DNA of 64,000 nucleotides, taken from sequence record NC_070882.1. One strand, 5' to 3'. Below, in pieces: positions 936 to 49,605 of this stretch (position 1 is its first letter; every line of letters begins with the position of its first letter). The position numbers were made by a program, and so were the translations under genes. The notes under the pieces are model-generated. The model had not been told where the DNA came from. It searched no databases and saw only the letters and a program-made list of their open reading frames with translations.

Positions 936-948
936 CAAGGAGTTAATC

Positions 949-1188: not shown

Positions 1189-1198
1189 GACGGCATAA

Positions 1199-1240
1199 AG
1201 CTCCTACCTTCGGGTAGGAGCTATGCTTTATTTTTTTTAT
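1199..1240. terminator. Bidirectional intrinsic terminator
   Basis: AGCTCCTACC-TTCG-GGTAGGAGCT hairpin plus T-run between convergent genes. Confidence 0.9.
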
Positions 1241-1659: not shown

Positions 1660-1697
1660 ATTAATTGTTAGACGACTATGCCGGGGGTCCTCGTTGA

Positions 1698-3299: not shown

Positions 3300-3310
3300 T
3301 TTGTATTACC

Positions 3311-3907: not shown

Positions 3908-4031
3908 TGAAGCTCCTAATGGAATAGTGTAGTAACATAGATGTTACAGGAAACGTAACTTTTCACATATTACGAAGACATACCTGCAACATAACCGTAT
4001 GTTAGATATTCATTTATACAGGATAATTCCA

Positions 4032-6213: not shown

Positions 6214-6275
6214 GACAAAGGGGAATCTTACCAATTCCCCTAATTCTTTGACTATTCACAAACTAGGAAATCCCC

Positions 6276-7706: not shown

Positions 7707-7713
7707 ACATAAC

Positions 7714-7740
7714 GCCCTCCCTGAAGGGAGGGCTTTATGC
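7714..7740 (+). terminator. Intrinsic terminator hairpin
   Basis: GCCCTCCC-TGAA-GGGAGGGC-TTTATG. Confidence 0.8.
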
Positions 7741-7779
7741 CGGCAATGGTATAGGTTTTAAGAAAGAACAGGATTACAT

Positions 7780-9048: not shown

Positions 9049-9057
9049 CGGCATAAA

Positions 9058-9077
9058 GCCCCACCTAATGGTGGGGC
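9058..9077. terminator. Bidirectional terminator
   Basis: GCCCCACC-TAAT-GGTGGGGC between convergent genes. Confidence 0.8.
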
Positions 9078-9086
9078 AATATGTTG

Positions 9087-9455
9087 TCAATACCCTTTAT
9101 TCAAGAGTTCTGCTAAAGCGCGTGCTTGTGAGATATTAGTCGATGCAAAGACATCAGAAAGATATCCTTCGTTTGCTTCAGCTCCTTTACGAAGTTCTTT
9201 CATCAGGTCAGGATTCGCCTTTGCCCATGTTTCCCATAGAGCTAAATATGCATCCCATGAGTTTATAGGACTCAACGGAGGCTTGCCTTTACCGAGCTTC
9301 CAATTAGTACCACCAACATCATAACCTTTAACATCGCATTGGTAGTGCATCTCAATAGTTCGGCCATCGGGCATTACAGCATTTAAGGCGGAGAACCTTT
9401 TATCGCCAACGGAGGAACATTCGTATCCTCCGCGACGTTTCCATCGATATATCAC
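9087..9455 (-). CDS. Conserved phage protein, putative divergent NADAR-like ADP-ribosylhydrolase
   Basis: RFSAL..DGRTIEMHYQ..KG parallels NADAR/T4 30.3 LSNF..DG..S.E.YYQ..K; GTG start overlaps polymerase TGA. Confidence 0.5.
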   Translation of the reverse strand: MIYRWKRRGGYECSSVGDKRFSALNAVMPDGRTIEMHYQCDVKGYDVGGTNWKLGKGKPPLSPINSWDAYLALWETWAKANPDLMKELRKGAEANEGYLSDVFASTNISQARALAELLNKGY

Positions 9456-11395
9456 TTTGGGGAGTTAGCCTTCTTATCCAAATAAAGCTTCAGCATCTCA
9501 TCCAGCTTCGGAGCCTTCATGATTTTCTGACAGATCTCAATGGCATTAACACGTCCACCTGTTAAGTTCACACCTACTTCTCGACGATGATGTTCGGAGA
9601 TATCTTTCATCATGGAGAATTCCATGACAGTTGTTTCCCGAGCGATATTGAGAATCTGACTAACGTTCGGATAAGTCGAAACGATGTCAAGGTCAGCTAC
9701 GTGACTAAAGATCAAAGTCTTGTAATCAGGTAAGTCCTTAACACACTTCAACCCATTTGGACCAGCCATATAGGACGGCAGTGTAACAATCCAGCTATCA
9801 TGACCTACAACGTATTGATCTAGCTCGTGAACCATCTGGTCAGAGCTAGTTCCAATTACGCATGGCTCAGGACGGTTCAGATACCAGAAGTGCATATCGT
9901 CACAGAGACGCTTCGGGTTAGAGCTGAAGTTCTTATAGTCAGAAGACTTAGAGAACAGAGTAATCGAACTAGCAAGGTCGTTGATCTTTTCATCCAGTTG
10001 TTCCAGACGAATGGAGTCAATGATGTTGTAAAGACCATAACGAACCTTGTGGTTCTTCTGCATCTCAATGTGCCATTCGATACCACCAAGATGATCAGTT
10101 TCAGCAAACTTAAGTTTACCAAAGTTCATTGTGTAACGAACATGGTTACCTAGGTGTACAGTTTCACCCCAAGTGAAATGCTCTACTGGCGTCCAATCAT
10201 CCTCTTTACCGCTATAGTTAACAAACAGATACGGATAACTACCAGGACGTTCTACCAGAAGTTTATCAAGACTCTTCTTGAATTTAATCAGATCTTCTTC
10301 ACCAAGAATCTCTGTTTCTTCATCAACGTTTAGCTCCTTCTTAAGAATATAGTCGAGAGCATACGAAGGCTCTTTACCTTTAGCAAGACGAGTTACCCGA
10401 TACGTAGACATCGCATCAATGGGTTGGAAAGAGGCAGGACATGTAATCCAATGCCACTGATCTTCAGGTCCCTTAGATTTAGTAACACCAGAAGCGGTAG
10501 TTGTCATCGCCTGGTCTTGGCGGAAATGGAAATACTTGTAATTATTAGGAACAGACGGATCGCTAAATACAAGTGCCGGATCAACTCCTGCATCTTCCAG
10601 GGTCTTCAAGATTCGACTCATGTCGAAGCTGATGTTCCAGAAAGAGAAGAAGTCTGGTTTCCATTCGTGTAGCCGCTTAATACAGTTAATGACAATGTGA
10701 ACTGGTTGATCAACCACTTCGATTTCTATTTTAAGATTACGGCCATTACGAAGTGCACCCAATTCAGGAATACGTTCTAGTTCCTCGAACGTTTCTTTCA
10801 CGGGGTCTTTAAGATCACTAACCCAATGTTTAAGATAGGCAAGATAAACGTTTTCTTTATGGCTTACGGACATACAGATAATCTGTCCGTCTTTTCCATC
10901 TTCGTAAACGTTGGTCTCAATATCACCACCTGCTACCGTGTTACGAGAAATGAGATCAGGTGCAGCAGTTCGATAATCGTTCTTCAAGCAGCATACAGAA
11001 CTAACGTCCGCACCATACAGGTAAGGACTTCGACTCAGTTGACGAAGCCTAGGGTTAGGTCCCATGCTGTAATCACCCAGAGCTTTAGCAATCGCATGCG
11101 GCATGTTAATCTGGGTAGACTTACGTTTAATAAGCTTACTAGCGTACTCATAGTCTTTCTTCTCATGATAGGTACGCTGGCTTTCTTTTTTATTTGCTTC
11201 AGGATCCAGCCACCATGGCCGTTCATAATCCTCAATAAACCTCAGTCGTGGAATCCTGCGTTTATCTTTAAGATGCACGACTTCTTTAACAACATGTAAG
11301 TCATGCTTACGGTGATTCCTATCGGTGACGTATGTAATATGTTTAGCCTCGACACCGATTACATCTTCTTTACTGAAAGAAATATTATCACTCAT
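9452..11395 (-). CDS. Split family-B DNA polymerase, exonuclease plus motif-A half (phiKZ gp82-like)
   Basis: ExoI DIET, ExoII FWNISFD, ExoIII YNIID and PolB motif A DLDIVSTYP; motifs B and C absent. Confidence 0.88.
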   Translation of the reverse strand: MSDNISFSKEDVIGVEAKHITYVTDRNHRKHDLHVVKEVVHLKDKRRIPRLRFIEDYERPWWLDPEANKKESQRTYHEKKDYEYASKLIKRKSTQINMPHAIAKALGDYSMGPNPRLRQLSRSPYLYGADVSSVCCLKNDYRTAAPDLISRNTVAGGDIETNVYEDGKDGQIICMSVSHKENVYLAYLKHWVSDLKDPVKETFEELERIPELGALRNGRNLKIEIEVVDQPVHIVINCIKRLHEWKPDFFSFWNISFDMSRILKTLEDAGVDPALVFSDPSVPNNYKYFHFRQDQAMTTTASGVTKSKGPEDQWHWITCPASFQPIDAMSTYRVTRLAKGKEPSYALDYILKKELNVDEETEILGEEDLIKFKKSLDKLLVERPGSYPYLFVNYSGKEDDWTPVEHFTWGETVHLGNHVRYTMNFGKLKFAETDHLGGIEWHIEMQKNHKVRYGLYNIIDSIRLEQLDEKINDLASSITLFSKSSDYKNFSSNPKRLCDDMHFWYLNRPEPCVIGTSSDQMVHELDQYVVGHDSWIVTLPSYMAGPNGLKCVKDLPDYKTLIFSHVADLDIVSTYPNVSQILNIARETTVMEFSMMKDISEHHRREVGVNLTGGRVNAIEICQKIMKAPKLDEMLKLYLDKKANSPK

Positions 11396-38444: not shown

Positions 38445-38876
38445 ATGCAGAACGTGTTCTTTCGTATTGACCACGTTTGGTCATACAACTTTATTGGATC
38501 TATAAAAGGATTCATCGATCTTTCAATAGATGTAGTAAACCACTTATACTCTTTAGCCACCGAGTATGTGAAACTACAGCACAACTTTATTTATAACCAC
38601 AACGCTAAAGAGTTCAATAAAGGGTATCAATACATCCTTATGGAACTACAACGCTATCCAATCGATACAAGTTTCTTTGAAGGTAATTTCAAAGAACTAT
38701 ATAACTTTCATCGATTAGCATTTAATAGCTTAAAAGGTGAAATCGAGACTATAAAGACATATTGCAACGACGAAGGGAATATAGAGGCGTTCATTATAGA
38801 ACTTCGTGAGTGTCCACCTTGCATTCAAAGCATTTTAAACCCTATATCACAATTGGGAATAAACCAGTTATATTAG
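38445..38876 (+). CDS. Hypothetical protein
   Basis: 143 aa, SD TAGGA, AT-rich. Confidence 0.65.
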   Translation: MQNVFFRIDHVWSYNFIGSIKGFIDLSIDVVNHLYSLATEYVKLQHNFIYNHNAKEFNKGYQYILMELQRYPIDTSFFEGNFKELYNFHRLAFNSLKGEIETIKTYCNDEGNIEAFIIELRECPPCIQSILNPISQLGINQLY

Positions 38877-38883
38877 GTGCTTT

Positions 38884-39027
38884 ATGCAAGAACAAGCTAA
38901 GGAAGAAATGTTCCCGCGTTCCAATAAGAGTGATCCCAATGTCCCACCGAGCTGGGTTAAACTAGAGCATGTTGTAATCGTGTTCGTTATCTCTCTTGTT
39001 GCAACAATCATTTTCAACGGCTTCTAA
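38884..39027 (+). CDS. Small protein with C-terminal TM helix (not in ORF track)
   Basis: 47 aa MQEQAKEEMF...VVIVFVISLVATIIFNGF; alternative start 38908. Confidence 0.6.
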   Translation: MQEQAKEEMFPRSNKSDPNVPPSWVKLEHVVIVFVISLVATIIFNGF

Positions 39028-39036
39028 GGATAAACC

Positions 39037-39201
39037 ATGTTCTATGATCATAATAAACCTCACGAAGAAAACGAAAAGAGTCGTCGTGAGTACGCCCACA
39101 ATCGTGAACTTATGCAATATGCAACCGCTGGTATTGCTTTAATAACCGCTGCAATTACCCTTACTATAGCGGTAAAAAAGGCAGTGAATGAGTTCACCTA
39201 A
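39037..39201 (+). CDS. Small protein with C-terminal hydrophobic helix (not in ORF track)
   Basis: 54 aa, SD AAGGA, ATAGIALITAAITLTIAV. Confidence 0.65.
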   Translation: MFYDHNKPHEENEKSRREYAHNRELMQYATAGIALITAAITLTIAVKKAVNEFT

Positions 39202-39269: not shown

Positions 39270-39743
39270 ATGGCTGAATTCGTGATAGGTAAAGACATTT
39301 TTAAAGAGCCTGGGGATCTTTACCTAATAACTGTTAATACCCGTGGCGTAATGGGTACAGGTTTAGCGGAAAGCTTCCGTGAGAAGTTCCCTGAACTGTA
39401 TCAAAGATATAAACATGATTGCAAGTATCGAATCATCACCATCGGTAACCCAACCATCTATCTTGCCGATGATGGTAAACGTTACATGATGTTCCCAACG
39501 AAAGATCGTTGGCAAGATGATTCGCAGTTAAGCTATATCAATGACGGCCTCCAATGGATAGTCGACAATATTGATGTAGAAGATGGGATCGACCCTAAGT
39601 GGAAGATCGTAGTACCACCGCTCGGTTGCGGAAACGGCATGCTGAAATGGCCTGATGTTAAACAAACATTAGAAAAGTTCAGTAGTCATATCCCTAACGA
39701 GATGGTGGTCGTAGTACCGCCCTGGATGGCGGCCCTTGCTTAA
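39270..39743 (+). CDS. Macrodomain protein, DarG-like ADP-ribosylhydrolase (phiKZ gp104-like)
   Basis: VNTRGVMGTGLA..F..FP, FPTK..W..S, PPLGCGNG.L.W..V motifs; start 39270 after SD AAGGAG. Confidence 0.85.
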   Translation: MAEFVIGKDIFKEPGDLYLITVNTRGVMGTGLAESFREKFPELYQRYKHDCKYRIITIGNPTIYLADDGKRYMMFPTKDRWQDDSQLSYINDGLQWIVDNIDVEDGIDPKWKIVVPPLGCGNGMLKWPDVKQTLEKFSSHIPNEMVVVVPPWMAALA

Positions 39744-39756
39744 TCAAACCTAAAAA

Positions 39757-39777
39757 GCCCTGGTCTTCGATCAGGGC
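39757..39777 (+). terminator. Terminator hairpin
   Basis: GCCCTGGTC-TTC-GATCAGGGC-TTTATG. Confidence 0.8.
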
Positions 39778-39817
39778 TTTATGTCGTGTCAAACCAAACC
39801 CAAAAGGAAATTGAAAA

Positions 39818-40246
39818 ATGAATATCGCAATCAACGCAATTGTAGCTGTAAGTGTAATCGCTTTCCTGGCCTACATGGCTTATGCAATTTACATGCACCG
39901 TCAACATGAGCTAGCTAAAGGGATCAAATCGGATATCTGGCGCTGGCACATGAAAACTATGGATAACATGATCGGTAAGATGGAGAACATTCTCAGGTAC
40001 TCTAGTTTGAAGAGTAGTTTCGTAGCCGGTGAACGTCAGTTCGTTGAAGTTATTCGCGAATATCGTATTAAGTCGATCGCTAATACCGAAAGTAAACTTC
40101 GTCAAGCTGGACTCGTGAGTGGTCTGTGTAATGAAGTAAGTAATCACAACGAACATGTGGCCGACGATGTAATTGATCGTGTTCTCGGTCATTTCATCAC
40201 CGATCAGAATCTGCTTCAGCGCATCGCTCGTAAGTCCGTAGTCTAA
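39818..40246 (+). CDS. N-terminally membrane-anchored protein
   Basis: 142 aa; IAINAIVAVSVIAFLAYMAYAIY. Confidence 0.8.
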   Translation: MNIAINAIVAVSVIAFLAYMAYAIYMHRQHELAKGIKSDIWRWHMKTMDNMIGKMENILRYSSLKSSFVAGERQFVEVIREYRIKSIANTESKLRQAGLVSGLCNEVSNHNEHVADDVIDRVLGHFITDQNLLQRIARKSVV

Positions 40247-40273
40247 AGACTACATTCAAACCAATTTAAAGGC

Positions 40274-40281
40274 TATATTAC
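40274..40281 (+). promoter_or_regulatory. Early promoter TATATTAC
   Basis: TTTAAAggcTATATTACaagTGTGATA. Confidence 0.8.
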
Positions 40282-40317
40282 AAGTGTGATATTAGTCAAC
40301 AGATCAAGGAGATCAAC

Positions 40318-40422
40318 ATGGGACTCGCACGCTTCTGTGTAAAACTCGCTGCATGTATCATCGTTGTTAATGCTGCCTGTTGGGCAGTTGATGAAGTATT
40401 CAATGCTGCTCAAGGAGAATAA
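40318..40422 (+). CDS. 34-aa hydrophobic mini-protein (not in ORF track)
   Basis: SD AAGGAG; MGLARFCVKLAACIIVVNAACWAVDEVFNAAQGE. Confidence 0.7.
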   Translation: MGLARFCVKLAACIIVVNAACWAVDEVFNAAQGE

Positions 40423-40424
40423 AC

Positions 40425-40520
40425 ATGAACACTCTCGTAAAAACTGTATTTGTCGTAACTGTCGGTATCCTGGCAATGAATATTGCTGGTACTCTTTACG
40501 ATGAAGTAGTGGGTGCATGA
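40425..40520 (+). CDS. 31-aa hydrophobic mini-protein (not in ORF track)
   Basis: SD AAGGAG; MNTLVKTVFVVTVGILAMNIAGTLYDEVVGA; ATGA overlap with next gene. Confidence 0.7.
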   Translation: MNTLVKTVFVVTVGILAMNIAGTLYDEVVGA

Positions 40521-40846
40521 AAACCCGCTATGTTGTTGGTGCCGTTGCATTAGGTATAATTGTATCCGGTTTTGCTGGTGCAGCTTATCTAATGCAAAGG
40601 CATATCGACATGGTTAATAAAGTCGTAGCTAAGGCCGGTAAGGTCGTTGAAAGCTATCACCATGTCTTGCTCCGTAGGAGTCAGTACCTCTTTGGTGATC
40701 CAGAGAGACGCTACGCGATGCTACGTAAAGCATGTTGGGAAGAGGTTCGTGAGATCCTAGATCAGGAATACGAGCCAATCCGAAAGACTGCTGAACCGCG
40801 TGTCGATCATTATATCAAACAGGTCATCTATCGAGACCTACCTTAA
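40517..40846 (+). CDS. N-terminally membrane-anchored protein
   Basis: 109 aa; YVVGAVALGIIVSGFAGAAYL. Confidence 0.8.
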   Translation: MKTRYVVGAVALGIIVSGFAGAAYLMQRHIDMVNKVVAKAGKVVESYHHVLLRRSQYLFGDPERRYAMLRKACWEEVREILDQEYEPIRKTAEPRVDHYIKQVIYRDLP

Positions 40847-40861
40847 AAAGGGAACTCCATC

Positions 40862-41059
40862 ATGAAAAAGATTCTGGTTGTTACTGGTGCTCTGGCTGCC
40901 GTTATCGCTCTCGGTACAGCTGCATGTAAGCTGTATGAAACTCTGAACGACAACGTTGTCGAACCAACTGGCGATGATGCATCCACGGATACCACAGCTG
41001 AATCTCCTGTTCAAGAACAGGATACCTCTGCTCCGGCTGAAGAAACAACTGCTCAATAA
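40862..41059 (+). CDS. Membrane-anchored or secreted small protein with acidic tail
   Basis: 65 aa; MKKILVVTGALAAVIALGTAAC. Confidence 0.8.
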   Translation: MKKILVVTGALAAVIALGTAACKLYETLNDNVVEPTGDDASTDTTAESPVQEQDTSAPAEETTAQ

Positions 41060-41085
41060 CCCCATCTGCAAATAAGGAAAGTAAC

Positions 41086-41367
41086 ATGTTCGGTAATTTT
41101 GTAAAAGGTCTGGGTTGTGTTGTAGTCGGCGGTGTAATCTCGATGATCGCCATTACATGGACCGACGAGAACACAGCAGAAGAAGTCATGCAGAAACTGC
41201 GTGACGCCAATGATCGAATCCCGCCGGATTACGATCTCGATAAACGTAAAGAAGAACTGTCCGATCTGGCAGAACGCCTGATCCATGAAGCAGAAGAACG
41301 TATTCTGCTGACGGCAACTCTGCGCGAACTGCGTGAGGAAGTTGTCAAGTTCCTGCGTAAACTGTAA
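41086..41367 (+). CDS. N-terminally membrane-anchored coiled-coil protein
   Basis: 93 aa; GLGCVVVGGVISMIAITW. Confidence 0.8.
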   Translation: MFGNFVKGLGCVVVGGVISMIAITWTDENTAEEVMQKLRDANDRIPPDYDLDKRKEELSDLAERLIHEAEERILLTATLRELREEVVKFLRKL

Positions 41368-41371
41368 TAAG

Positions 41372-41399
41372 AAGGGCTCTTCGGAGCCCTTTCTTTTTA
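41372..41399 (+). terminator. Intrinsic terminator
   Basis: AAGGGCTC-TTCG-GAGCCCTT plus T-run. Confidence 0.9.
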
Positions 41400-41435
41400 T
41401 CATATTCGAATGTACATTTAAGTCTTTTTAAAACG

Positions 41436-41443
41436 TATATTAC
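41436..41443 (+). promoter_or_regulatory. Early promoter TATATTAC
   Basis: TTTAAAacgTATATTACaaaTGTGATA. Confidence 0.8.
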
Positions 41444-41482
41444 AAATGTGATAATACCCCTATCTAGAGAAGGAAACTCAAC

Positions 41483-41638
41483 ATGAAAGCTATCGTAATG
41501 GTTCTGGTTGGTATGGTTCTCGGTGCAGCTGTTGTTTACGGCGGTTCCTATGAAGCTCCGAAAGTTGAAAAAGAATCCGAGGTTATTCTCGGTCATCGTA
41601 TCGGTCCCAATGGCCAAGAAATGCTCGTAACTAAATAA
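41483..41638 (+). CDS. 51-aa N-terminally anchored protein (not in ORF track)
   Basis: SD AAGGA; MKAIVMVLVGMVLGAAVVYGG. Confidence 0.75.
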   Translation: MKAIVMVLVGMVLGAAVVYGGSYEAPKVEKESEVILGHRIGPNGQEMLVTK

Positions 41639-41649
41639 GGAGATAAAAA

Positions 41650-41991
41650 ATGGAAAAGTCCGTAGCAGTTAAAGTAATCGACAACATGTGCCGTCCGAAT
41701 ATCGTTGCTCGCATGAATGGTAAACTGGTCTACCATGCGCGTAACGTAGAAATAGTGGAAGGTAAGGATCTATGGCCAAATCGCACTGACGTAGATGATG
41801 TTCGTGTACTGGTCGGTGAAACCTTCCGTAACGGTGAATGGGTATCCCTGCGCAGTTCTAGCCTGGTTAAAGTAGACACTGTTGCTGGTGTATACGAAAC
41901 CCTCAACTCTGTTTACCTTGCTCCGGATCTTCTGGGAAGTCTCTCGGTTGGTCCCGACGTCTTCAATTCGGATGCCACTCTGAAAGGGTAA
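41650..41991 (+). CDS. Small conserved phage beta-rich protein
   Basis: 113 aa, SD AAGGAG; G....S..V..D...G..ET.NS.Y pattern recalled from phage hypotheticals. Confidence 0.75.
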   Translation: MEKSVAVKVIDNMCRPNIVARMNGKLVYHARNVEIVEGKDLWPNRTDVDDVRVLVGETFRNGEWVSLRSSSLVKVDTVAGVYETLNSVYLAPDLLGSLSVGPDVFNSDATLKG

Positions 41992-41996
41992 TAGTC

Positions 41997-42149
41997 ATGG
42001 ACTTCATTAAAGAAAATGCACTCAGCTTGGGTCTCATCGCCGTAGCCGTTGTCGGCTTCGTCGGCGTTGCTGCTTACCATAACAACTGGATGGAAGAGCG
42101 TCGTAAGACCAAGGACGAAACTGCAAAACCAAAAGCTGAACTGCGTTAA
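41997..42149 (+). CDS. 50-aa N-terminally anchored protein (not in ORF track)
   Basis: ALSLGLIAVAVVGFVGVAAY followed by a charged tail. Confidence 0.75.
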   Translation: MDFIKENALSLGLIAVAVVGFVGVAAYHNNWMEERRKTKDETAKPKAELR

Positions 42150-42187
42150 TCCATTCTCACTTCAAATTCGAAAATAGGAATATACAA

Positions 42188-42511
42188 ATGAATCAAGTCC
42201 TCAAAGAAATGGCAATTGGTCTTGGCGTTGCCCTGGCTGTCGCTGGTGTCATGATCGGTACTGATATCGTGGCTAAGAGTCTGAACGATAAGATTCTTTT
42301 CGCTGATTTCAGTAAGCGGTTGGACGTACTGATCCAAGAAGCACGTAAAGCTGCGATCGAGAATGATACCGCTGCTCGTCTGCGTTTCTCTCAGGGCCTG
42401 TTGAGTCTCCGCATTAAAATGGCTATTGAAATGCGTGATCGTGACGGTGAGTACAAAGCTGCATTCGATGTACGCATCGATGAATTCAAATCCGAAATGG
42501 GTTGGGGGTAA
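42188..42511 (+). CDS. N-terminally membrane-anchored helical protein
   Basis: 107 aa; MAIGLGVALAVAGVMIG. Confidence 0.8.
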   Translation: MNQVLKEMAIGLGVALAVAGVMIGTDIVAKSLNDKILFADFSKRLDVLIQEARKAAIENDTAARLRFSQGLLSLRIKMAIEMRDRDGEYKAAFDVRIDEFKSEMGWG

Positions 42512-42515
42512 TAGG

Positions 42516-42902
42516 ATGGAAACCTACGTTAAATACGGTCTCATTGCATTGGCGGTTAGTGCAACCGCCGTTGCTGCTATCCTCGCCGTAAAAGCAACCA
42601 CCAAGGAAGAAGGGCGAACTGTAGCGGAACAGATCGAAAGCAGTATCTCCGATATTCTTATCGATAAGATCTCGGCCTACCGTAATAGTGATCAACATCG
42701 CAAGTTGGTGAATCGGCTCAGGCGTGATCGTGAACTGGATGTCGCAGAGTTCATTTCGCGTATCCAGCTGGACATCGCTCTGAACGTTCTTCCGGAGGTA
42801 GAAGTACTTCTGGAATCTCATCGTGATCAGCTGACCGAGGAAGAGTTCGATCGGCTGGTTGCAAATCTCCAACATTTCGTACAACGGATCATCGCTAAGT
42901 GA
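42516..42902 (+). CDS. N-terminally membrane-anchored helical protein
   Basis: Start moved to ATG 42516; YGLIALAVSATAVAAILAV. Confidence 0.8.
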   Translation: METYVKYGLIALAVSATAVAAILAVKATTKEEGRTVAEQIESSISDILIDKISAYRNSDQHRKLVNRLRRDRELDVAEFISRIQLDIALNVLPEVEVLLESHRDQLTEEEFDRLVANLQHFVQRIIAK

Positions 42903-43075
42903 AAACCAAAATAGGTGTAGGTTTTCTTGCAGTTCTGATGGGACTCGCTGCTGCTTGCGGTGAGTTCTATTATGAACTGACCAAACCCGAAGGTAAGGTT
43001 TCGAAGGAATGGTGTCAACATCCGGCTAAACTGAAATGTACTATGTTTGCATTCACTGTAAATGAGGATAAATAA
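42899..43075 (+). CDS. 58-aa N-terminally anchored Cys-containing protein (not in ORF track)
   Basis: GTGA overlap start; IGVGFLAVLMGLAAAC; TAA abuts next ATG. Confidence 0.7.
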   Translation: MKTKIGVGFLAVLMGLAAACGEFYYELTKPEGKVSKEWCQHPAKLKCTMFAFTVNEDK

Positions 43076-43678
43076 ATGGATAGTCGTCTGTCGAAAGTCT
43101 TCCAAAACGTGGACCATGTGTTCACCCAAGAGCAGACCAATGAACTGGTCAATCGTCGTAATGAAGACATGATGTTGACCGTAAAGGTTGACGCTATGCT
43201 GGCGTTGATCAAAAACGATGCGGTTAAGTTCAAAGATCTGGAAACGTTGATCATTAATGATGCAATCGATTTCATTACAGCTGAACGTGCATCTGATATC
43301 GCACTGGGCCTTTTCAACAAAATGGTTTACCAGGATGTTGGACCAGATGCAGTCGGCTTGTTGGAATATGCCAAAGCCGCCGAGTACATGTGCACGCACG
43401 TGGATGAATCCTGTGCATGGGTCAATACGTACCGTGATAAGCTGAAGTCTTTCATGGTCACTTTCACCTCTCAGTGCATTGGCAATGCTCTGGTTCGTTC
43501 TGAGCTGAGAACTCTTCAAGCTCAAAACTACAACATCGCCAAGCAAAACTTTCGCAACATGAGTAAACCTGCCCCTGAAGGCACCGTAAAGGAACTGGCT
43601 GCAAAATACGGTAAGTCCATTTCGGAGATCCGCCGTATGAAAGCCGAAGGTCGTCTTGGGGAACTGACCCAAGAATAA
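43076..43678 (+). CDS. Hypothetical protein with C-terminal HTH-like motif
   Basis: VKELAAKYGKSISEIRRMKAEG. Confidence 0.75.
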   Translation: MDSRLSKVFQNVDHVFTQEQTNELVNRRNEDMMLTVKVDAMLALIKNDAVKFKDLETLIINDAIDFITAERASDIALGLFNKMVYQDVGPDAVGLLEYAKAAEYMCTHVDESCAWVNTYRDKLKSFMVTFTSQCIGNALVRSELRTLQAQNYNIAKQNFRNMSKPAPEGTVKELAAKYGKSISEIRRMKAEGRLGELTQE

Positions 43679-43680
43679 TA

Positions 43681-43705
43681 GATGGGTCTCTTCGGAGACC
43701 CCATC
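43681..43705 (+). terminator. Hairpin, probable terminator
   Basis: GATGGGTCTC-TTCG-GAGACCCCATC. Confidence 0.75.
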
Positions 43706-43773
43706 TCAATGTGTCTTGGAAAGGATGCATTGAGATGTACTCAACTAAACCCAAATGTAAAAAGGAAATTACC

Positions 43774-44892
43774 ATGAAACAATATCGCGAACCCACCACC
43801 CGTCTGACCAAAGAAAAACTGGAATGGGTTATCGAACGTCGCAAGGAACGTAAAGCCGAGAGCCCCTTCGGCCGCGCTCATTTCCCTGCTGGTACCCGTG
43901 CAATCTTCGAGTCCTGTTCTCTCCGTTTCCTGGACGAAAATGAACGCGTGTATCCCGGTCAGCGTTATGAAACCTTCGAAGCTACCGTTCTTGGTATCGT
44001 GGCCAATGGTCATGACAGCTATGTCGCTGTTCTGGATAAACCCTGCAACTTGATCGAAGGACGCAAGTACAGCATCAACATTAGCTGGTGTAAAAAGATC
44101 CTCGAACGTGGCGAAGGTAACTTCACCTGGTTCAAAGAAGAACCGACTGAGTACGATCATGCGCATGGTTGGAACATCCGTGAGAAACATCCGACTGTTC
44201 GTTGGGTAGAAGGTCCTCGCCCTACTAAGGTTCGCAACCTGACCTGGGCTGAGGAGTTCGACTACCATCGTCATACCGATCCGGTCTACGTCGAGATCAA
44301 CAAGCACCACAACCAGTACTTCATCACTGACATGCGTACGTTCGTGATGTTCGCTCTCCAAGAGCATCCTGCATATACCAACCCTTCGAAGGATCATCTG
44401 TACGATCTGGAGAAACTGGTAGCAGCGATGTATGCTGATCCGACTATCAAGGCAGCTGAAGTAAAACTGTCTCGTTATTTCGGTAGCTGGTTGATCAGCA
44501 AGAAGAAGTTCCATAAAGTCCTGCAACGCTTGCTGCCATTCTACAAGACTTCTCGTCGTAAGGCGCAGGAAGAAGATAACAAAGCAATGTCCGAAATGTA
44601 CGAAAAAGAAATGGAACGTGACTTCGATGAAATGTATGGAGAGTCTTCGGATTCTTCTGATGAATCGTGCTACTCCATGGAAGACTCGTACTACGACTCT
44701 GGTTTGGATGACGACATCGAGATGACTGACATGTATGAAGATTCGGCATGTTCTCGTGAAATCAGTGATGACGTTCAACCCAAAACCATCGGTGAACTCC
44801 TGCGTGAAGCAATGGAAGAACCCGACGAAGATAAATCCAAACTGGTTATCAGCAGTATGGAAACTCTCTCGGAAGCGGTTGTTATCAAATAA
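43774..44892 (+). CDS. Hypothetical protein with acidic C-terminal tail
   Basis: Start moved to ATG 43774 after SD AAGGA. Confidence 0.8.
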   Translation: MKQYREPTTRLTKEKLEWVIERRKERKAESPFGRAHFPAGTRAIFESCSLRFLDENERVYPGQRYETFEATVLGIVANGHDSYVAVLDKPCNLIEGRKYSINISWCKKILERGEGNFTWFKEEPTEYDHAHGWNIREKHPTVRWVEGPRPTKVRNLTWAEEFDYHRHTDPVYVEINKHHNQYFITDMRTFVMFALQEHPAYTNPSKDHLYDLEKLVAAMYADPTIKAAEVKLSRYFGSWLISKKKFHKVLQRLLPFYKTSRRKAQEEDNKAMSEMYEKEMERDFDEMYGESSDSSDESCYSMEDSYYDSGLDDDIEMTDMYEDSACSREISDDVQPKTIGELLREAMEEPDEDKSKLVISSMETLSEAVVIK

Positions 44893-44925
44893 TTCGTTCC
44901 TAAGAACTTTCAATAAGGAATAGGC

Positions 44926-45066
44926 ATGCTCTGGAAAATCACGTGTTACAATGGTACTGTCTGGGAGGCTCCCTCACAAATGGGAATCGAAGAGGCACTT
45001 CAAAAGTTCTATCGTGACACTGAATTGTCGCAGTGGGATATTGTCAAAATAGAAAACATGCATTAA
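44926..45066 (+). CDS. 46-aa hypothetical protein (not in ORF track)
   Basis: MLWKITCYNGTVWEAPSQMGIEEALQKFYRDTELSQWDIVKIENMH; fills the operon gap. Confidence 0.65.
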   Translation: MLWKITCYNGTVWEAPSQMGIEEALQKFYRDTELSQWDIVKIENMH

Positions 45067-45075
45067 GGAGTAATT

Positions 45076-45708
45076 ATGGACGTCGTTCAAGCAGTTCTGG
45101 TAATGGCTGCCCTTAAAGAACAAGCCGTCAAAGGCGTTGTTCGCGTTGCATTGACTCACCCCCGTGCAGCTAACTGGGTAAAGGTCGAAGATCGACTGAT
45201 TCCTGACTATACTTCCAAGATCACTCACATCGAAGTTCCGCTTCACGATGTGCTGATCATGGGTAATGTCAATGCCAGTGGCAAATACGAACGCTGCGTC
45301 GTGCGTAACAACGCAAGCTGGTATGATATCATCATCCTGAAAAATGGTGTACCGACTGTGGAAGGTTGGATGCATCAACGCGCTACCGCAGACATGCAGG
45401 TCAAAGCTCTGGGTACTGTAGCGGAGTGGTCTAAACCCGCTACTGCTGCCTTACCTAATCCGACCAAGATCTTCTTCCATCTGGTAACCGTAATGGATAC
45501 CGATGGTCGTGTCTGGTCTGTGGTGATCGAAGCTCGTGGTATCCCGGTAACTCAGGAAAACGTGAAAGATAAACTGTCCATGGGTATGTTCTTCGAGAGT
45601 GAAGAACACGCCCGTGAATACGTCAACGATCGAGTAATGTTCTTCAGTGAGGTCTCTCCGACTAAACCTCAATGCAACGCCCTGTCGTATGCACAGGTAG
45701 CTGCATGA
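45076..45708 (+). CDS. Hypothetical protein
   Basis: 210 aa, SD AAGGAG. Confidence 0.8.
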   Translation: MDVVQAVLVMAALKEQAVKGVVRVALTHPRAANWVKVEDRLIPDYTSKITHIEVPLHDVLIMGNVNASGKYERCVVRNNASWYDIIILKNGVPTVEGWMHQRATADMQVKALGTVAEWSKPATAALPNPTKIFFHLVTVMDTDGRVWSVVIEARGIPVTQENVKDKLSMGMFFESEEHAREYVNDRVMFFSEVSPTKPQCNALSYAQVAA

Positions 45709-45713
45709 TAACA

Positions 45714-45745
45714 GGGGACCTTCGGGTCCCCTTTTTATTTTTTAT
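45714..45745 (+). terminator. Intrinsic terminator
   Basis: GGGGACC-TTCG-GGTCCCC-TTTTT. Confidence 0.9.
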
Positions 45746-45798
45746 ATCGTAATTTTTTATTTAGTAATAAACCCATAAACCGCAAAAAGGAAATTACC

Positions 45799-46827
45799 AT
45801 GATCATTAATGCAAGCCTGAACCGCGCTATGTTTTCCACTCAGACCAACGAAGCTGCCGAACTGCTTCTGTTGTCTTATCTGCGTACCTCACCCGATGCG
45901 GCCGCAACCGAGGATAATGCTACCAAACGTATCCTGGCGGCCAAAGATAATTTGGTTGCACTGTGGAAGAACGGCTGCCGTTTTGTGATCGACGATGACC
46001 ATCGTTGGATCATCTCTGAATTTGGAAATGCCATTCGTATTGCATATCAGGGACGTATCCGTGGTAGCTGGACTACCTTTGGTATTAACCTTGTGGACAT
46101 CAATAACGGTGAAGCTGTTCTGAACGTTATTCGTGCCCGGCTTCGTACTGGTTACCCGGCGGATGAACTGCAACCTGGTTCTAATATCAAAGGGCATCTG
46201 TATGAAGACTACAAGGTGAATGGAAGTGGGATGTGGGCCGTAGGTCGAATCATTCTCGGCTTGCAGCCCAATGGGGTATTCCTCTGGGCTACTCTCGAAC
46301 GTCTCTATGAGGTGGCTAAATATCACAAGCTGTACGCCGATATCGTTGATGATTTCGGGATCAATCACGACCGTGATTACCTGAACAACATCGTCGATGG
46401 GAAATGGGTAGTGAATGAAGCTAACGCTAAGGCAGTGCTGAATAGCTACTTCGTATCGATGCTGAAGTTTTTCTATGAGCGTGGGTTCTACTACCAAGAC
46501 ACCATCGATGGCGGGCGCATCGATATTCGTTCCAACGTAGGTTCCTACCACTTCGATGGAAAGAATGCGACTGCGCACACGATCAATATTACTTACCTCA
46601 GCGAGAACAGCTACGAAGTTCGTGATAATGAATGGGAATTCTGTTGGGATTGCAACAACACCGAATACTTCCCTCTGGAAGCTCCTGTTGAAGCACTGAC
46701 TGCATTCCAAACTCGTGTCGACAAAGAGCATATCTACATGGCGACTGGTCGTGGTTATAAGCTGGAAGATATCCACAACATCCAGCGTACTAAACGTGAA
46801 CCTACCGAGTGGGAACAAGGGAAGTGA
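45799..46827 (+). CDS. Hypothetical protein
   Basis: 342 aa, SD AAGGA, phage-like codon use. Confidence 0.8.
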   Translation: MIINASLNRAMFSTQTNEAAELLLLSYLRTSPDAAATEDNATKRILAAKDNLVALWKNGCRFVIDDDHRWIISEFGNAIRIAYQGRIRGSWTTFGINLVDINNGEAVLNVIRARLRTGYPADELQPGSNIKGHLYEDYKVNGSGMWAVGRIILGLQPNGVFLWATLERLYEVAKYHKLYADIVDDFGINHDRDYLNNIVDGKWVVNEANAKAVLNSYFVSMLKFFYERGFYYQDTIDGGRIDIRSNVGSYHFDGKNATAHTINITYLSENSYEVRDNEWEFCWDCNNTEYFPLEAPVEALTAFQTRVDKEHIYMATGRGYKLEDIHNIQRTKREPTEWEQGK

Positions 46828-47114
46828 TTAACATTAATCACGATCTACCTATCTGGGTATTACTACTATTAAGTACAGCCACATCATTCATCTACGCTTT
46901 TGTAAAAACCTTTCAGCAAAGAAACATCTTTCATGGTTATAAAAAGGCTGCTTTCTTCACCTCGTGGGGTATCAGTACCCTTGAGTTGACCACCATTGGC
47001 CTATTTGTGATAGTGGGTCTTCCCGCTATTATATCTAGTGGTCTAGGTGGTTCTATAGGTGTCGTGTTGGCAATGACATTCCATGATAAGATTTTTCGTA
47101 AATTAACAAAATAG
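46824..47114 (+). CDS. Small 3-TM membrane protein (DUF5698/UPF0316-like pattern)
   Basis: Probable GTG start overlapping upstream TGA; SSGLGGSIGVVLAM helix. Confidence 0.6.
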   Translation: MININHDLPIWVLLLLSTATSFIYAFVKTFQQRNIFHGYKKAAFFTSWGISTLELTTIGLFVIVGLPAIISSGLGGSIGVVLAMTFHDKIFRKLTK

Positions 47115-47123
47115 GAAAAAACA

Positions 47124-47462
47124 ATGTCTCGTAAACTCGGAAAGAAACATCCTCGCAATCGTTACGAGGATGCTAAGGCATATGAACACAAGTTGCGCAC
47201 TGAGAAAGCCCAACTGGCGAACTGCCGACTGGGGCAATTGTATTCGGTTCGTATCCTGAATGACAACTGCTTCTTGCGTGATCGCCTCATGTGCCAGGAA
47301 CAGGATATGTTCGATCCTCTTCGACTGACCCGTGCTAAACGGGAACGTTATCTCAAAGGTGAGCGCTATTGGCTCAATGCTGGATCGGGTAAATTCATTC
47401 GTTCTGGCTATGAAAAGAACTGGGCTAAAAATAAACGTAAGGAGATGGCAAATGAGCAGTAG
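47124..47462 (+). CDS. Basic hypothetical protein
   Basis: 112 aa, SD TAGGA, K/R-rich. Confidence 0.75.
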   Translation: MSRKLGKKHPRNRYEDAKAYEHKLRTEKAQLANCRLGQLYSVRILNDNCFLRDRLMCQEQDMFDPLRLTRAKRERYLKGERYWLNAGSGKFIRSGYEKNWAKNKRKEMANEQ

Positions 47463-47736
47463 TTATAACCCACCGGTGGACACTGTTGATGTCCTCCATA
47501 TCGACTGCGAGTACGAAACGTTCTCGTTCGGTAAGTTGTTTCAACGTATGGTCGATCACTTCGGTAGCGATATCAAGCTGGACGATTTCGAAATCGAAGC
47601 AACCAAGATCAAAGTACGTGGTTGCAACTGTTGTTTGGATCTGGATGACTACACGGATTATATTCGTGTAACTCGTCTTACCCAACCCGCCGCCGATACC
47701 GAGACCCTATCGATCGAAGGTCTTATTGTCGGTTGA
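47452..47736 (+). CDS. Hypothetical protein with GCNCC motif
   Basis: Start moved to ATG 47452 after SD AAGGAG. Confidence 0.75.
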   Translation: MSSSYNPPVDTVDVLHIDCEYETFSFGKLFQRMVDHFGSDIKLDDFEIEATKIKVRGCNCCLDLDDYTDYIRVTRLTQPAADTETLSIEGLIVG

Positions 47737-47745
47737 CGGCATAAA

Positions 47746-47767
47746 GCCCCTACCTTCCGGTAGGGGC
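47746..47767 (+). terminator. Terminator hairpin
   Basis: GCCCCTACC-TTCC-GGTAGGGGC. Confidence 0.75.
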
Positions 47768-47896
47768 TAAATCCCATTTCTTTTCGCCAAAGAGTTCGTC
47801 TCGGGCATTGCGCGTTTTGGGCACTAACCCAGCAGTAGGAATAAGAAGTAACGCGTAATCTCCTTACATACTATCAGCCAATAGGTATTATTTCAC

Positions 47897-48451
47897 ATGG
47901 ACAAAAAACTGAAAGAATTCCAAGCAGTGACTCCGGGCGTAGATCGTTTCGTTTATTACGAGAAAACTGACACCTGGCTCCCCAAAGATACTCGTCCAAT
48001 GGACTGTTTCCGCAATAAGAAAGCAATAGAGGCATTCGATAAAGCCAACGAAGAAATTCAAGAACGTTGGTTCTATTGGTGCATCGCATGGGAGAAAGCT
48101 TCTGTTCGCCCTACAATGGAAACCGAACTCTGGAAGAACCCGTTCATCTCTGTTGAAGAACGACTGGAGATTGCAGAAGGCGCCATCGCGTTCCGTAACG
48201 AGGTCATCAGAAATCTCCAGGGACGTTTAGTTTCGCCAACGATTGCCGAGTTCAAACTTAACGACGAAATGGTGGAAGCTATCTTGGATAGCAGTTACAC
48301 TGTAAAAGATTTCGATCGGAACTCGGAAACGGGCGAAGTAGAGCTTCAGTATCAGATTTCCAATAACTTCCACAATCGCGAGTTGGCACGTGATACTGTT
48401 CACCGTATCATCAATGCCCTCAAACAACTTACCCCGGTGCAACAGCAATGA
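47897..48451 (+). CDS. Hypothetical protein
   Basis: 184 aa; ATGA overlap with next gene. Confidence 0.75.
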   Translation: MDKKLKEFQAVTPGVDRFVYYEKTDTWLPKDTRPMDCFRNKKAIEAFDKANEEIQERWFYWCIAWEKASVRPTMETELWKNPFISVEERLEIAEGAIAFRNEVIRNLQGRLVSPTIAEFKLNDEMVEAILDSSYTVKDFDRNSETGEVELQYQISNNFHNRELARDTVHRIINALKQLTPVQQQ

Positions 48452-48657
48452 TCTACCTTGGTTGGTTCACCATCATCTTCGTGGTGATGGGTCTTGGTTT
48501 ATTCGGTGCTTTCTGTCATCGAATAGTTAATTCCACTAATCCTGGATTGGAAGAGAAGCGTACTACAATGAATATCGCTATCTGGACAGGTATTCTTCTA
48601 GTGCTCGCTTATCTCAATGAAATCAGTCGGGTCTTTATTGTAGGGGTAGTTACATGA
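48448..48657 (+). CDS. Small 2-TM membrane protein
   Basis: 69 aa, two hydrophobic helices. Confidence 0.75.
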   Translation: MIYLGWFTIIFVVMGLGLFGAFCHRIVNSTNPGLEEKRTTMNIAIWTGILLVLAYLNEISRVFIVGVVT

Positions 48658-48896
48658 CATTACAAGAGCTGCGTGAACTTCTTTATAAAGAAGCTGGTAT
48701 GGAATCAATCCATGCTAAAATTAAGCAACGGGCGCTCGCTGGTGATTCAGAGGTAAACTTCGATTACAGCAACGAGAACACGCCAGTTGAAGGAAAGATG
48801 AATAATCGTCAAGCGGAAATCCTCCGTAAAGACGGTTACATTGTTGAATACAATAGTGCCTGTCTCTGGTACGAAGTAAAAGGATGGGATGAATAA
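48654..48896 (+). CDS. Hypothetical protein
   Basis: 80 aa; ILRKDGY.V..W pattern; coupled overlaps. Confidence 0.75.
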   Translation: MTLQELRELLYKEAGMESIHAKIKQRALAGDSEVNFDYSNENTPVEGKMNNRQAEILRKDGYIVEYNSACLWYEVKGWDE

Positions 48897-49162
48897 TGGG
48901 ACTTCGTTACATGGGTTATTCCGTTAAAGCAACTGTGACTGACCGTGAAGGCGAGTCGCATATCTTTGACGGCTTTGCCAAGCCTGGCGAGGGTAATTCG
49001 GTTTATCCCGGAGCTAATGGTGAAGGCGATAAGCGTCTTGCAGCTCGCCGCGCACTGGAAGCCTTCATGGATAGTCCAGTCTTCGAGGAACTAACATCAG
49101 ATATGTACGATACGTTCGATGTTCGTTTCAATTCTCTTGTACACACTGGAATGCCGGAGTAA
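48896..49162 (+). CDS. Hypothetical protein
   Basis: 88 aa; TAATG overlap. Confidence 0.75.
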   Translation: MGLRYMGYSVKATVTDREGESHIFDGFAKPGEGNSVYPGANGEGDKRLAARRALEAFMDSPVFEELTSDMYDTFDVRFNSLVHTGMPE

Positions 49163-49167
49163 TAAAA

Positions 49168-49605
49168 ATGTCGATGTATACCAAAGACAACGCTGAACTT
49201 TACACCCACAAAGAAGATGGTGGTATTTACTACTACCATGGCTTGGCTCATGGTACCGGTGATCAACGTGGAGAACTGCTGCACATCTACAGTGATTACT
49301 TCACTGACATGATGTACTACCGTAACCACACCTGGTCTACTCGGATGGAACGCGTTTCTGCTCCAGGGCTTCGTCTGAGTCGTTTCTTGCATCCACGTCT
49401 GTGGATCACCACTCTGATCGGTTTGATGATCATTATCATTACTCAGGTTGTTTTCGGCACCGAGTTCAATGCAATCACTCCCCAAGAGATTGTCGGTACA
49501 GCCGTCGCTGGTGTACTGGCACTGGGTCTTCCGAGTTTCATCCTGCACCAACTGTACAAGTGGAAGTACAGGAAACCTGTTAAACAGAAGTCCGAAGCGG
49601 CATAA
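49168..49605 (+). CDS. DUF1653-like N-terminal domain fused to two TM helices
   Basis: LYTHKEDGGIYYYHGLA..H.Y resembles DUF1653 YRHYKG..Y.V.G.A; hydrophobic C-terminal half. Confidence 0.55.
   Translation: MSMYTKDNAELYTHKEDGGIYYYHGLAHGTGDQRGELLHIYSDYFTDMMYYRNHTWSTRMERVSAPGLRLSRFLHPRLWITTLIGLMIIIITQVVFGTEFNAITPQEIVGTAVAGVLALGLPSFILHQLYKWKYRKPVKQKSEAA

Follow-up and report, generated by a model that had tools for sequence, protein, structure and literature searches.

Early membrane proteins of small size are familiar from the bacteriophages T4, T5, and SPO1. In T4, the superinfection exclusion proteins Imm and Sp and the antiholin rI are small membrane-anchored proteins of the immediate-early class that act at the cell envelope and can be dispensed with under laboratory conditions, and the host-takeover module of SPO1 (gp37 to gp60, including the division inhibitor gp56) is a dense group of small early genes, unrelated to one another and individually dispensable, that lie behind strong promoters. 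Here we describe a locus of similar build in Pseudomonas phage vB_PaeM_PS119XW (NC_070882.1; Pawinskivirus; 301,543 bp), an array of 12 genes at positions 39818–43075 of the 64,000-nucleotide stretch that was analyzed (hereafter the window; record coordinates are window coordinates + 62,000). Eleven of the 12 products begin with a hydrophobic helix. The reading we favor, at a probability of roughly 0.5, is that the locus is an accessory island of mutually unrelated small envelope proteins, typical of the phiKZ-like Pseudomonas chimalliviruses and of conditional benefit to the phage. The island has no homology to T4 Imm, Sp, or rI in PHROGs, Pfam, or NCBIfam, and the T4 genes are scattered, whereas the island is an array of 11. 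The SPO1 module differs in another way, since it encodes mostly cytoplasmic proteins and is transcribed by the host polymerase, whereas nearly all island products have hydrophobic N-termini and the island would be transcribed by an injected phage polymerase.

The 3.3-kb array matches the PS119XW record at 100% and is 99.6–99.9% identical between PS119XW and PA1C, BRkr, phiHQ, HHBS36_1, and phiLBG22. Because this PA1C-like phage encodes a nuclear shell protein (chimallin, gp054) and PhuZ (gp028), it is a nucleus-forming chimallivirus, as an earlier interpretation made from the DNA alone (the sequence-only reading) had supposed. The array consists of 12 plus-strand genes, PP933_gp113 to PP933_gp124 in RefSeq, each annotated as "hypothetical protein." We rebuilt the genome in full and ran a simple gene caller based on codon usage, which yielded 398 genes compared with 389 RefSeq coding sequences and recovered the RefSeq coordinates of all 12 array genes. 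The five genes of fewer than 60 amino acids (aa) that the sequence-only reading had counted in the array are present (34, 31, 51, 50, and 58 aa), though the public annotation already lists all five of these small open reading frames (mini-ORFs).

Hydropathy was expressed as the best 19-residue Kyte–Doolittle window (KD19) of each product. The maximum lies between 1.91 and 2.46 and starts at residue 3–10 in 11 of the 12 array products, the sole exception being gp120 (41650–41991), which peaks at 0.93. A single N-terminal helix is thus found in 11 of 12 array genes versus 16 of 386 genes elsewhere in the genome (Fisher p = 1.7e-13), in agreement with the original description of the array, and the two C-anchored mini-proteins described ahead of it (38884 and 39037) do carry C-terminal helices (gp110 and gp111). 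Nine of the 11 helix products have an uncharged run of 18–27 residues; the run is 15 residues in gp114 and 17 in gp124. The characterization of the soluble parts as acidic or helical applies to some members alone, namely gp117 (net charge −10), gp118 (net −6), and gp123, the soluble part of which is predicted to be a four-helix bundle with a predicted local distance difference test score (pLDDT) of 73–93.

All 12 array genes are retained, in unchanged order, in HPP-Temi, which is approximately 81% identical over the stretch. The ratio of nonsynonymous to synonymous substitution rates (dN/dS) between the two phages is 0.01–0.38 for 11 of the 12 genes, with dS values of 1.2–2.5 for gp113–gp118, which are near saturation, and of 0.2–2.2 for gp119–gp123; for gp124 the ratio is unmeasurable, dS being close to 0. 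The four measurable mini-ORFs have dN/dS values of 0.01–0.18 at dS values of 0.2–1.4. Given that the ORFs are kept in HPP-Temi at low dN/dS, we conclude that they are real genes, including those of 31 and 34 aa. A Shine–Dalgarno-like motif (AGGA, AAGG, or GGAG) lies close upstream of 10 of the 12 array genes; gp116 and gp124 lack one and overlap the preceding gene instead.

The promoters of the island belong to the early class of phiKZ. On its own, the 8-mer TATATTAC shows no enrichment in the window (4 seen, 1.97 expected); the extended motif TTWAA-N4-TATATYAC, with at most one mismatch, occurs 7 times against 0.61 expected, and none of 100 shuffles reached 7. Genome-wide, this motif has 11 exact matches, all on the plus strand and 27–40 nucleotides (nt), in one case 87 nt, before a gene start. 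The sequence-only reading held that two promoters drive most of the array; the sites at 40265 and 41427 match the 3′ core of the phiKZ early consensus and account for 10 of the 11 helix genes, but gp113 lies upstream of both, and a third site of the TATATCAC type at 38834–38850, ahead of gp110, adds to the count. The first two share TTCAAAC...TTTAAA...TATATTAC...GTGA with elements ahead of phiKZ gp005, gp006, and gp010.1, and a phiKZ "consensus early promoter" is printed in the phiKZ transposon study, where it was built into the donor construct for early expression of the marker. Both HPP-Temi and PhiPA3 carry the TATATCAC-type variant at the corresponding place, and in PS119XW it is spaced like the other 10 matches in the genome. 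Promoter 1 is retained in HPP-Temi and PhiPA3, and early-type promoters are found at matching positions in these two phages and also inside the islands of 201phi2-1 and RVTF4. Promoter elements of 38–42 nt recur on other contigs of the same genome (sequencing-run contigs). The hairpin and TTAT at 39756–39785 fit the phiKZ terminator motif (PMC10914365); the TTTATG that follows this hairpin was considered as a late promoter and rejected, because it belongs to the same motif (PMC10914365). The likely transcription units are gp110–gp112, gp114–gp118, and gp119 through gp125 on into gp126. The remaining gene, gp113, has no early promoter of its own and sits between the terminator at 39756–39785 and promoter 1.

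Expression and dispensability can be followed in phiKZ, because window positions 41582–48638 are colinear with phiKZ 4663–10150 (gp010.1 to gp019), with identity falling from 89% to 66% along the segment. The phiKZ genes gp010.1, gp011, gp012, an unannotated gp012.1, and gp013 are orthologs (83–89% nucleotide identity with window positions 41582–43456) that share with PS119XW promoter 2 and the families phrog_15989, phrog_23976, phrog_27375, and phrog_24977. The two loci differ in that phiKZ has the right-hand part only, at a different genome position, with no gp122 and no counterpart of gp113–gp118 there. In published RNA sequencing at 2-minute steps, the RNA of PHIKZ010.1, 011, 012, and 013 rises from approximately 0 before infection to 2361, 807, 1016, and 860, respectively, at 2 min and climbs further after this first time point. 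The proteins of PHIKZ012, 013, and 009 were detected in gradient fractions (Grad-seq mass spectrometry), and those of PHIKZ012 and 013, together with PhiPA3 locus tags AVT69_gp111–113, in a size-exclusion proteome. Transposon reads in phiKZ number 2522 for PHIKZ011, 667 for 012, 1425 for 013, and 5527 for 014, versus 13 and 15 for chimallin and a neighbor, and phiKZ gp14 was called non-essential by the authors of the transposon study. Early RNA, protein, and dispensability of the island are in this way shown by proxy only and would carry over to PS119XW from the phiKZ orthologs. A literature search found no paper on PHIKZ010.1–013 and none on this island.

The array is not a family of duplicated genes. 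Once the helices are masked, BLASTP matches no two products of the genome at E < 1e-3, and hhalign gives at most 1% for every pair of array families, although these profiles are shallow and deep paralogy is possible; the heads of gp121 and gp123 are the only related pair. Neither the hidden paralogy that an all-versus-all HHalign comparison had been suggested to reveal nor a "toolkit" in the sense of a coherent family is therefore seen, the soluble parts being mutually unrelated by BLASTP and hhalign. The features of the sequences predict that the products are inserted into membranes or exported. According to the positive-inside rule, gp113 and gp121 and, weakly, gp116 and gp123 are predicted to have cytoplasmic C-termini (C-in), and gp114, gp115, and gp117 to have C-termini on the other side (C-out); the topology of gp118, gp119, gp122, and gp124, which have acidic flanks, is ambiguous. 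The gp119 and gp124 families look like exported peptides with cleavable signal sequences rather than anchors. In the gp119 orthologs of phiKZ, PhiPA3, 201phi2-1, and EL, the helix runs directly into V/F-N-A, and a conserved C-terminal motif comes next; PS119XW gp119 itself has V-Y-G at the post-helix site. The gp124 family spans six genomes, with hhalign values of 93–96% for PhiPA3, RVTF4, and a metagenome contig, and its mature part retains a Cys-x6-9-Cys pair.

The island occurs in several phages and varies in content among them. It follows the macro-domain gene gp112, which itself lies behind homologs of the virion genes gp097–gp102, and the same island follows the macro gene in PhiPA3, 201phi2-1, and RVTF4. 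The layout in PhiPA3 is two unannotated C-anchored ORFs, the macro gene, gp114- and gp115-like ORFs, gp109, a gp117-like ORF, gp110–gp113, and a gp124 homolog, which amounts to approximately nine N-terminally and two C-terminally anchored members. In 201phi2-1 the island comprises gp166 (C-anchored), the macro gene, gp169, 170, 171, 173, 179, and 180, with approximately six members; RVTF4 has approximately 20 small membrane ORFs around its macro gene and EL has two. The phiKZ island is split over two loci, with gp102.1, 103, 108, and weakly 106 and 107 at the macro gene, where early promoters are also found, and the rest at gp009–gp012. No such genes adjoin the macro gene in Goslar and RAY, in which that locus was examined. 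A remote homolog of gp120 on a 2.5-kb metagenome contig is flanked by small membrane ORFs, and the run closes with a gp124-like gene. Within the PS119XW genome, predicted membrane mini-proteins are found among the first four genes of 5 of the 10 early-promoter units.

The island also bears traces of recombination. The phiKZ gp012 gene consists of the head of gp121 joined to the body of gp123 (window positions 41997–42600 versus phiKZ 5077–5160), and the switch point is an 11-nt stretch, GGTCTCATTGC, common to both helix-coding segments. One recombination at GGTCTCATTGC removes the gp121 tail, the whole of gp122, and the gp123 head. Helix-coding segments are shown to act as sites of recombination by which the soluble parts are reshuffled. 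Over 41582–44891, identity to phiKZ-like phages is 88–95%, compared with 66–69% in the downstream flank, and upstream there is no detectable match; a second segment of 88–95% identity (to PA7 and PA02) lies at 46762–47147, with 66–69% identity in the DNA between. For the macro protein gp112, amino acid identity is only 63%. Between PS119XW and HPP-Temi, dS is 1.2–2.5 on the left (gp113–gp118) and mostly 0–0.75 on the right, the exception being gp122 at 2.2. On the basis of this mosaic identity and the contrast in dS between left and right, we conclude that the right half recently moved between genera that share a host, which points to recent exchange between Pawinskivirus and Phikzvirus.

We therefore propose the following for an island of accessory envelope proteins. 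[quoted passage not shown] Host ribosomes would translate the messages, and host Sec/YidC would place the products into membranes of inner-membrane origin (the cell membrane and perhaps also that of the early infection vesicle), as far as their sequence features allow us to say. The proteins gp113, gp121, and probably gp116 and gp123 would be single-pass anchors that hold a small cytoplasmic domain; gp114, gp115, gp117, and probably gp118 would face the periplasm or the vesicle lumen; and gp119 and gp124 (the latter with a disulfide loop) would probably be released as exported peptides. Each member would act on its own, at the host envelope or at the infection site, and the members probably do not build an essential structure. 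Independent and conditional action is favored because the genes look individually dispensable in laboratory culture, differ widely in number from phage to phage, are quickly gained and lost, and pass between co-infecting phages, and because some of the products are predicted to face the periplasm. The likeliest benefits would be the exclusion of competing phages or the evasion or blunting of defenses that act at the membrane or the vesicle.

Several points weigh against this proposal. No member resembles a known exclusion, anti-defense, holin, or defense protein in PHROGs, Pfam, NCBIfam, or PADLOC. In phiKZ, PHIKZ010.1 has only 43 transposon reads and PHIKZ009 only 5, and given these few reads some island members may matter; the designation of PHIKZ011–013 as non-essential is our own comparison of insertion counts. 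A search of sequencing runs found no RNA run of a PS119XW or PA1C infection, and the runs compared (a DNA assembly of a close relative, a sludge metatranscriptome with phiKZ-like fragments, and a single contig from an RNA run) were uninformative about expression; membrane insertion, topology, and signal cleavage were judged by hydropathy and simple rules; and gp113 may not be early. More generally, PHROGs matches for the array are to families of "unknown function" only, Pfam, NCBIfam, and PADLOC gave sub-threshold noise only for the 10 members submitted to each, homology to superinfection exclusion proteins of the T4 Imm/Sp type yielded no named-function match in PHROGs, Pfam, or NCBIfam, and the ESM Atlas provided no informative relative of gp113, gp116, or gp120.

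The best of the alternatives, which we regard as doubtful, places the proteins mainly in the early infection vesicle, the lipid compartment in which nucleus-forming phages initially hold their genome, where they would serve the exchange of nucleotides or mRNA, the docking of ribosomes, or the handover of the genome to the protein nucleus. The precedent is phiKZ gp241, an early protein that, according to reviews, lies at the early infection vesicle or is anchored in it and is sensed by JukA. In common with array members, gp241 (109 aa) starts with a hydrophobic helix ahead of a soluble part; it has an early promoter of its own and carries many transposon insertions (2237 reads); it differs from the array in that it has no sequence similarity to any member, has a less hydrophobic helix (KD19 1.47), is encoded elsewhere, and has been studied with respect to localization. 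The early promoters of the island and the lumen-facing topology predicted for several members are consistent with residence in the vesicle, as is the end of the gp119 unit in a homolog of gp014, an abundant early ribosome-binding protein of phiKZ that is brought to the site of infection and for which PS119XW and PA1C homologs have been named (PMC10914614). However, PHIKZ011, 012, and 013 tolerate insertions, the number of members ranges from 2 to approximately 20 among phages that all make the vesicle, Goslar and RAY have none at the locus, and a pull-down of early proteins with the vesicle marker gp93 gave gp14, 16, 22, 38, 216, 238, and 280 and no ortholog from the block, with the caveat that this method easily misses membrane proteins. 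The sequence-only reading proposed a membrane toolkit dedicated to decorating the vesicle, excluding superinfecting phages, or blocking defense effectors at the membrane. The same insertions and the same variation in content argue against a toolkit that is both dedicated and necessary; given the gp241 precedent, decoration of the vesicle is still plausible. A bolder version, which we consider a shade less probable again, is that the array and gp241-like genes together encode a fast-evolving membrane proteome of the vesicle, the products being inserted on the spot. Messages leaving the vesicle would then be translated on ribosomes gathered by the gp014 homolog of the same unit, and the resident proteins could act as conduits, as sites where the nascent protein shell docks, or as decoys for defenses that sense the vesicle, such as Juk and Avs5.

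It is distinctly unlikely, in our view, that the island encodes host-takeover effectors that inhibit cell division or cell wall synthesis or time lysis in the manner of SPO1 gp56 or T4 rI. The build is similar (early, small, single-pass proteins with differing soluble parts), and the genes are likewise packed behind strong promoters, but PHROGs, Pfam, and NCBIfam provide no homology to any such protein. The lysis cassette is encoded elsewhere, with an Rz-like spanin at record position 142641, 38 kb away, and the phiKZ holin gp142 in a late cassette; early-type promoters and this distance from the spanin gene do not fit a holin or antiholin. In addition, when 15 early proteins of Churi were screened, only the gp014 homolog inhibited growth, although whether orthologs from the block were included is unstated.

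Even less probable is that gp117 and gp124 are receptor-masking lipoproteins, lipid-modified at a cysteine after the helix and acting like T5 Llp or T1/phi80 Cor. The cysteines that the sequence-only reading noted directly after the helix in two genes are present, in T-A-A-C of gp117 (the residue at position −3, a threonine, is atypical) and in L-A-A-C of gp124, which fits a lipobox ([LVI][ASTVI][GAS]C), and both proteins share with Llp and Cor a signal-like N-terminus that ends in small residues and cysteine (N-terminal K/R, an uncharged run of 17–19 residues, and small residues before Cys 22 or 20). They have no homology to Llp or Cor, however, and the cysteines are not conserved among orthologs: that of gp117 is tyrosine in HPP-Temi and is absent from the PhiPA3 and 201phi2-1 counterparts, and that of gp124 is found in PS119XW and HPP-Temi only and is absent from phiKZ, PhiPA3, RVTF4, and the metagenome contig, where the family nevertheless retains the downstream cysteine pair. 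This loss in orthologs weakens the hint of lipoproteins. Finally, that the small ORFs are untranslated chance ORFs in leader or spacer DNA, as five ORFs of fewer than 60 aa and the lack of proteomic support from PS119XW itself might suggest, is next to impossible to reconcile with the low dN/dS of the four measurable mini-ORFs, the Shine–Dalgarno-like motifs, and the maintenance of the families across genera.

The features of the island and its neighbors are listed in table 1, and relatives of individual genes extend the comparison. Homologs of gp110 are phiKZ gp102.1 and an unannotated ORF of PhiPA3, and at the position of gp111 there are similar C-anchored ORFs in 201phi2-1 (gp166) and PhiPA3 (unannotated). 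The macro gene gp112 was found by tblastn in 244 phage records; its domain, which is ADP-ribose-binding or -processing, and the early-type promoter it shares with gp110 and gp111 are compatible with a role as a counter-defense enzyme, which it could be. As judged by eye, gp114 has a PhiPA3 counterpart in an unannotated ORF of like size and sequence at the same position; also by eye, PhiPA3 gp109 (109 aa, with an N-terminal helix) takes the position of gp116, and BLAST gave no match between the two. PhiPA3 gp110 is a BLAST homolog of gp118, and 201phi2-1 gp171 shares an N-terminal motif and position with it, as judged by eye only. The one array product that lacks a helix, gp120, has relatives in 23 representative clusters, and an IMG/VR scan found it at one locus, on a 266,743-bp phiKZ-like contig. 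AlphaFold2 predicts a small beta domain for gp120 (block-mean pLDDT of 89–95 for residues 21–92), for which the fold search matched no solved structure and returned weak SANTA/DUF6957-like matches only. Profile matches to PHROGs are significant over the full length for gp118, gp119, gp120, and gp123; that of gp121 is confined to the initial 43 positions of the gp012 profile. For gp123, the fold search returned generic helical bundles and nothing informative, and matches in a word-index search were limited to proteins of phiKZ-like and PA1C-like phages.

Table 1. Genes and regulatory elements of the PS119XW island and its flanks (window coordinates)
Feature	Position	Strand	Description
Early-type promoter 3	38834–38850	+	TTTAAA-N4-TATATCAC; exact match to extended motif; within 3′ end of gp109, 34 nt before gp110
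gp110	38884–39027	+	47 aa; C-anchored; KD19 2.34 at residue 29; phrog_34982; dN/dS 0.13 versus HPP-Temi
gp111	39037–39201	+	54 aa; C-anchored; KD19 1.90 at residue 28; dN/dS 0.07
gp112	39270–39743	+	Macro-domain protein; phiKZ gp104 homolog; syntenic anchor of island; Pfam Macro E = 5.7e-7
Intrinsic terminator	39756–39785	+	phiKZ type; GC hairpin, then TTAT
gp113	39818–40246	+	142 aa; N-terminal helix, predicted N-out/C-in; Pawinskivirus only
Early promoter 1	40265–40287	+	For gp114–gp118; extended motif 40265–40281; core 40272–40287, 14/16 of phiKZ consensus
gp114	40318–40422	+	34 aa; N-in helix and acidic tail; dN 0.02 versus dS 1.38
gp115	40425–40520	+	31 aa; N-in helix and acidic tail; dN/dS 0.06
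gp116	40517–40846	+	109 aa; N-terminal helix and soluble part
gp117	40862–41059	+	65 aa; N-in helix and strongly acidic tail of low complexity (net −10); no conservation of Cys22
gp118	41086–41367	+	93 aa; N-terminal helix and acidic soluble part; phrog_25105, E = 1e-8
Intrinsic terminator	41371–41400	+	Between the two early units
Early promoter 2	41427–41449	+	For gp119 onward; extended motif 41427–41443; core 41434–41449, 16/16 to GTATATTACAAATGTG
gp119	41483–41638	+	51 aa; phiKZ gp010.1 family; phrog_15989, E = 3e-24; probable cleavable signal peptide and conserved C-terminal motif
gp120	41650–41991	+	113 aa; sole non-membrane array gene; phiKZ gp011 family; phrog_23976, E = 1e-63
gp121	41997–42149	+	50 aa; N-out/C-in helix (predicted); N-terminus equals that of phiKZ gp012
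gp122	42188–42511	+	107 aa; N-terminal helix and soluble part; Pawinskivirus only
gp123	42516–42902	+	128 aa; phiKZ gp012 family; phrog_27375, E = 6e-60; N-terminal helix
gp124	42899–43075	+	58 aa; GTG start overlapping gp123 stop; predicted exported mini-protein; conserved Cys pair
gp125	43076–43678	+	phiKZ gp013 homolog; soluble; same transcription unit as gp119–gp124; phrog_24977; colinear with phiKZ
gp126	43735–44892	+	phiKZ gp014 homolog; phrog_16056

In PhiPA3 (L004), unannotated ORFs are found at 6626–6766 and 6776–6946 (both C-anchored) and at 7629–7736, 7729–7833, 8184–8339, and 9780–9962, the latter four resembling gp114, gp115, gp117, and gp124, and phiKZ has an unannotated gp124 homolog at approximately 5472–5648, with a GTG start that overlaps the gp012 stop. 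For phiKZ gp009 (3805–4137), whose annotated start may be incorrect, an in-frame upstream ATG preceded by GGAG at a distance of 8 nt adds 47 residues, among them a hydrophobic helix at the N-terminus; its low count of transposon reads sets this gene apart from its neighbors. In HPP-Temi, the gp116 and gp124 orthologs (3720–4049 and 6107–6283) were deposited with starts at 3795 and 6146 that remove the N-terminal helix; upstream GTG starts restore full-length alignment. In RVTF4 (L008), positions 900–8900, especially 4548–4796, contain runs of C-anchored mini-proteins and one mini-protein with a textbook lipobox, L-T-G-C, and a multi-helix ORF of this phage has probably been labeled "holin" on hydrophobicity alone.

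Other groups of small membrane proteins are encoded elsewhere in the PS119XW genome. A second early-type promoter, at 211–227, heads four two-helix mini-proteins (263–457, 478–666, 675–935, and 949–1188; 64, 62, 86, and 79 aa), and a fifth two-helix ORF (100 aa) ends just before it. Window positions 46824–49605, 4–6 kb downstream of the array, encode three more small proteins (96, 69, and 145 aa), each with two or three helices by prediction. Further runs of single N-terminal-helix proteins are found at record positions 253836–255021 (151, 149, and 56 aa) and 265290–266074 (130 and 125 aa), within a long block of small plus-strand genes at 227–286 kb. Between gp125 and gp126, a GC-rich hairpin (GGGTCTC-TTCG-GAGACCC, 43682–43701) is kept in phiKZ ahead of gp014; it has neither the T-run nor the TTAT of the other terminators and could serve in processing or attenuation ahead of the gp014 homolog, which is highly expressed.

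The finding is a good experimental lead and no surprise in itself. Among the unanswered questions named in a 2026 review are how nucleotides, mRNA, and proteins are exchanged across the vesicle and what the small uncharacterized genes of jumbo phages do, and the island provides a short, well-delimited list of 11 candidate early membrane or exported proteins, four families of which (gp118, gp119, gp123, and gp124) are common to phiKZ or PhiPA3, two phages with established genetics and imaging. The island also illustrates how such genes evolve by gain and loss, by recombination within helix-coding DNA, and by exchange between phage genera that share a host. If the members act in exclusion or counter-defense, the island would matter for how jumbo phages that infect Pseudomonas aeruginosa are chosen and combined; if they are instead the proteome of the vesicle, these phages would represent a bacterial virus with a lipid organelle that has its own resident membrane proteins.

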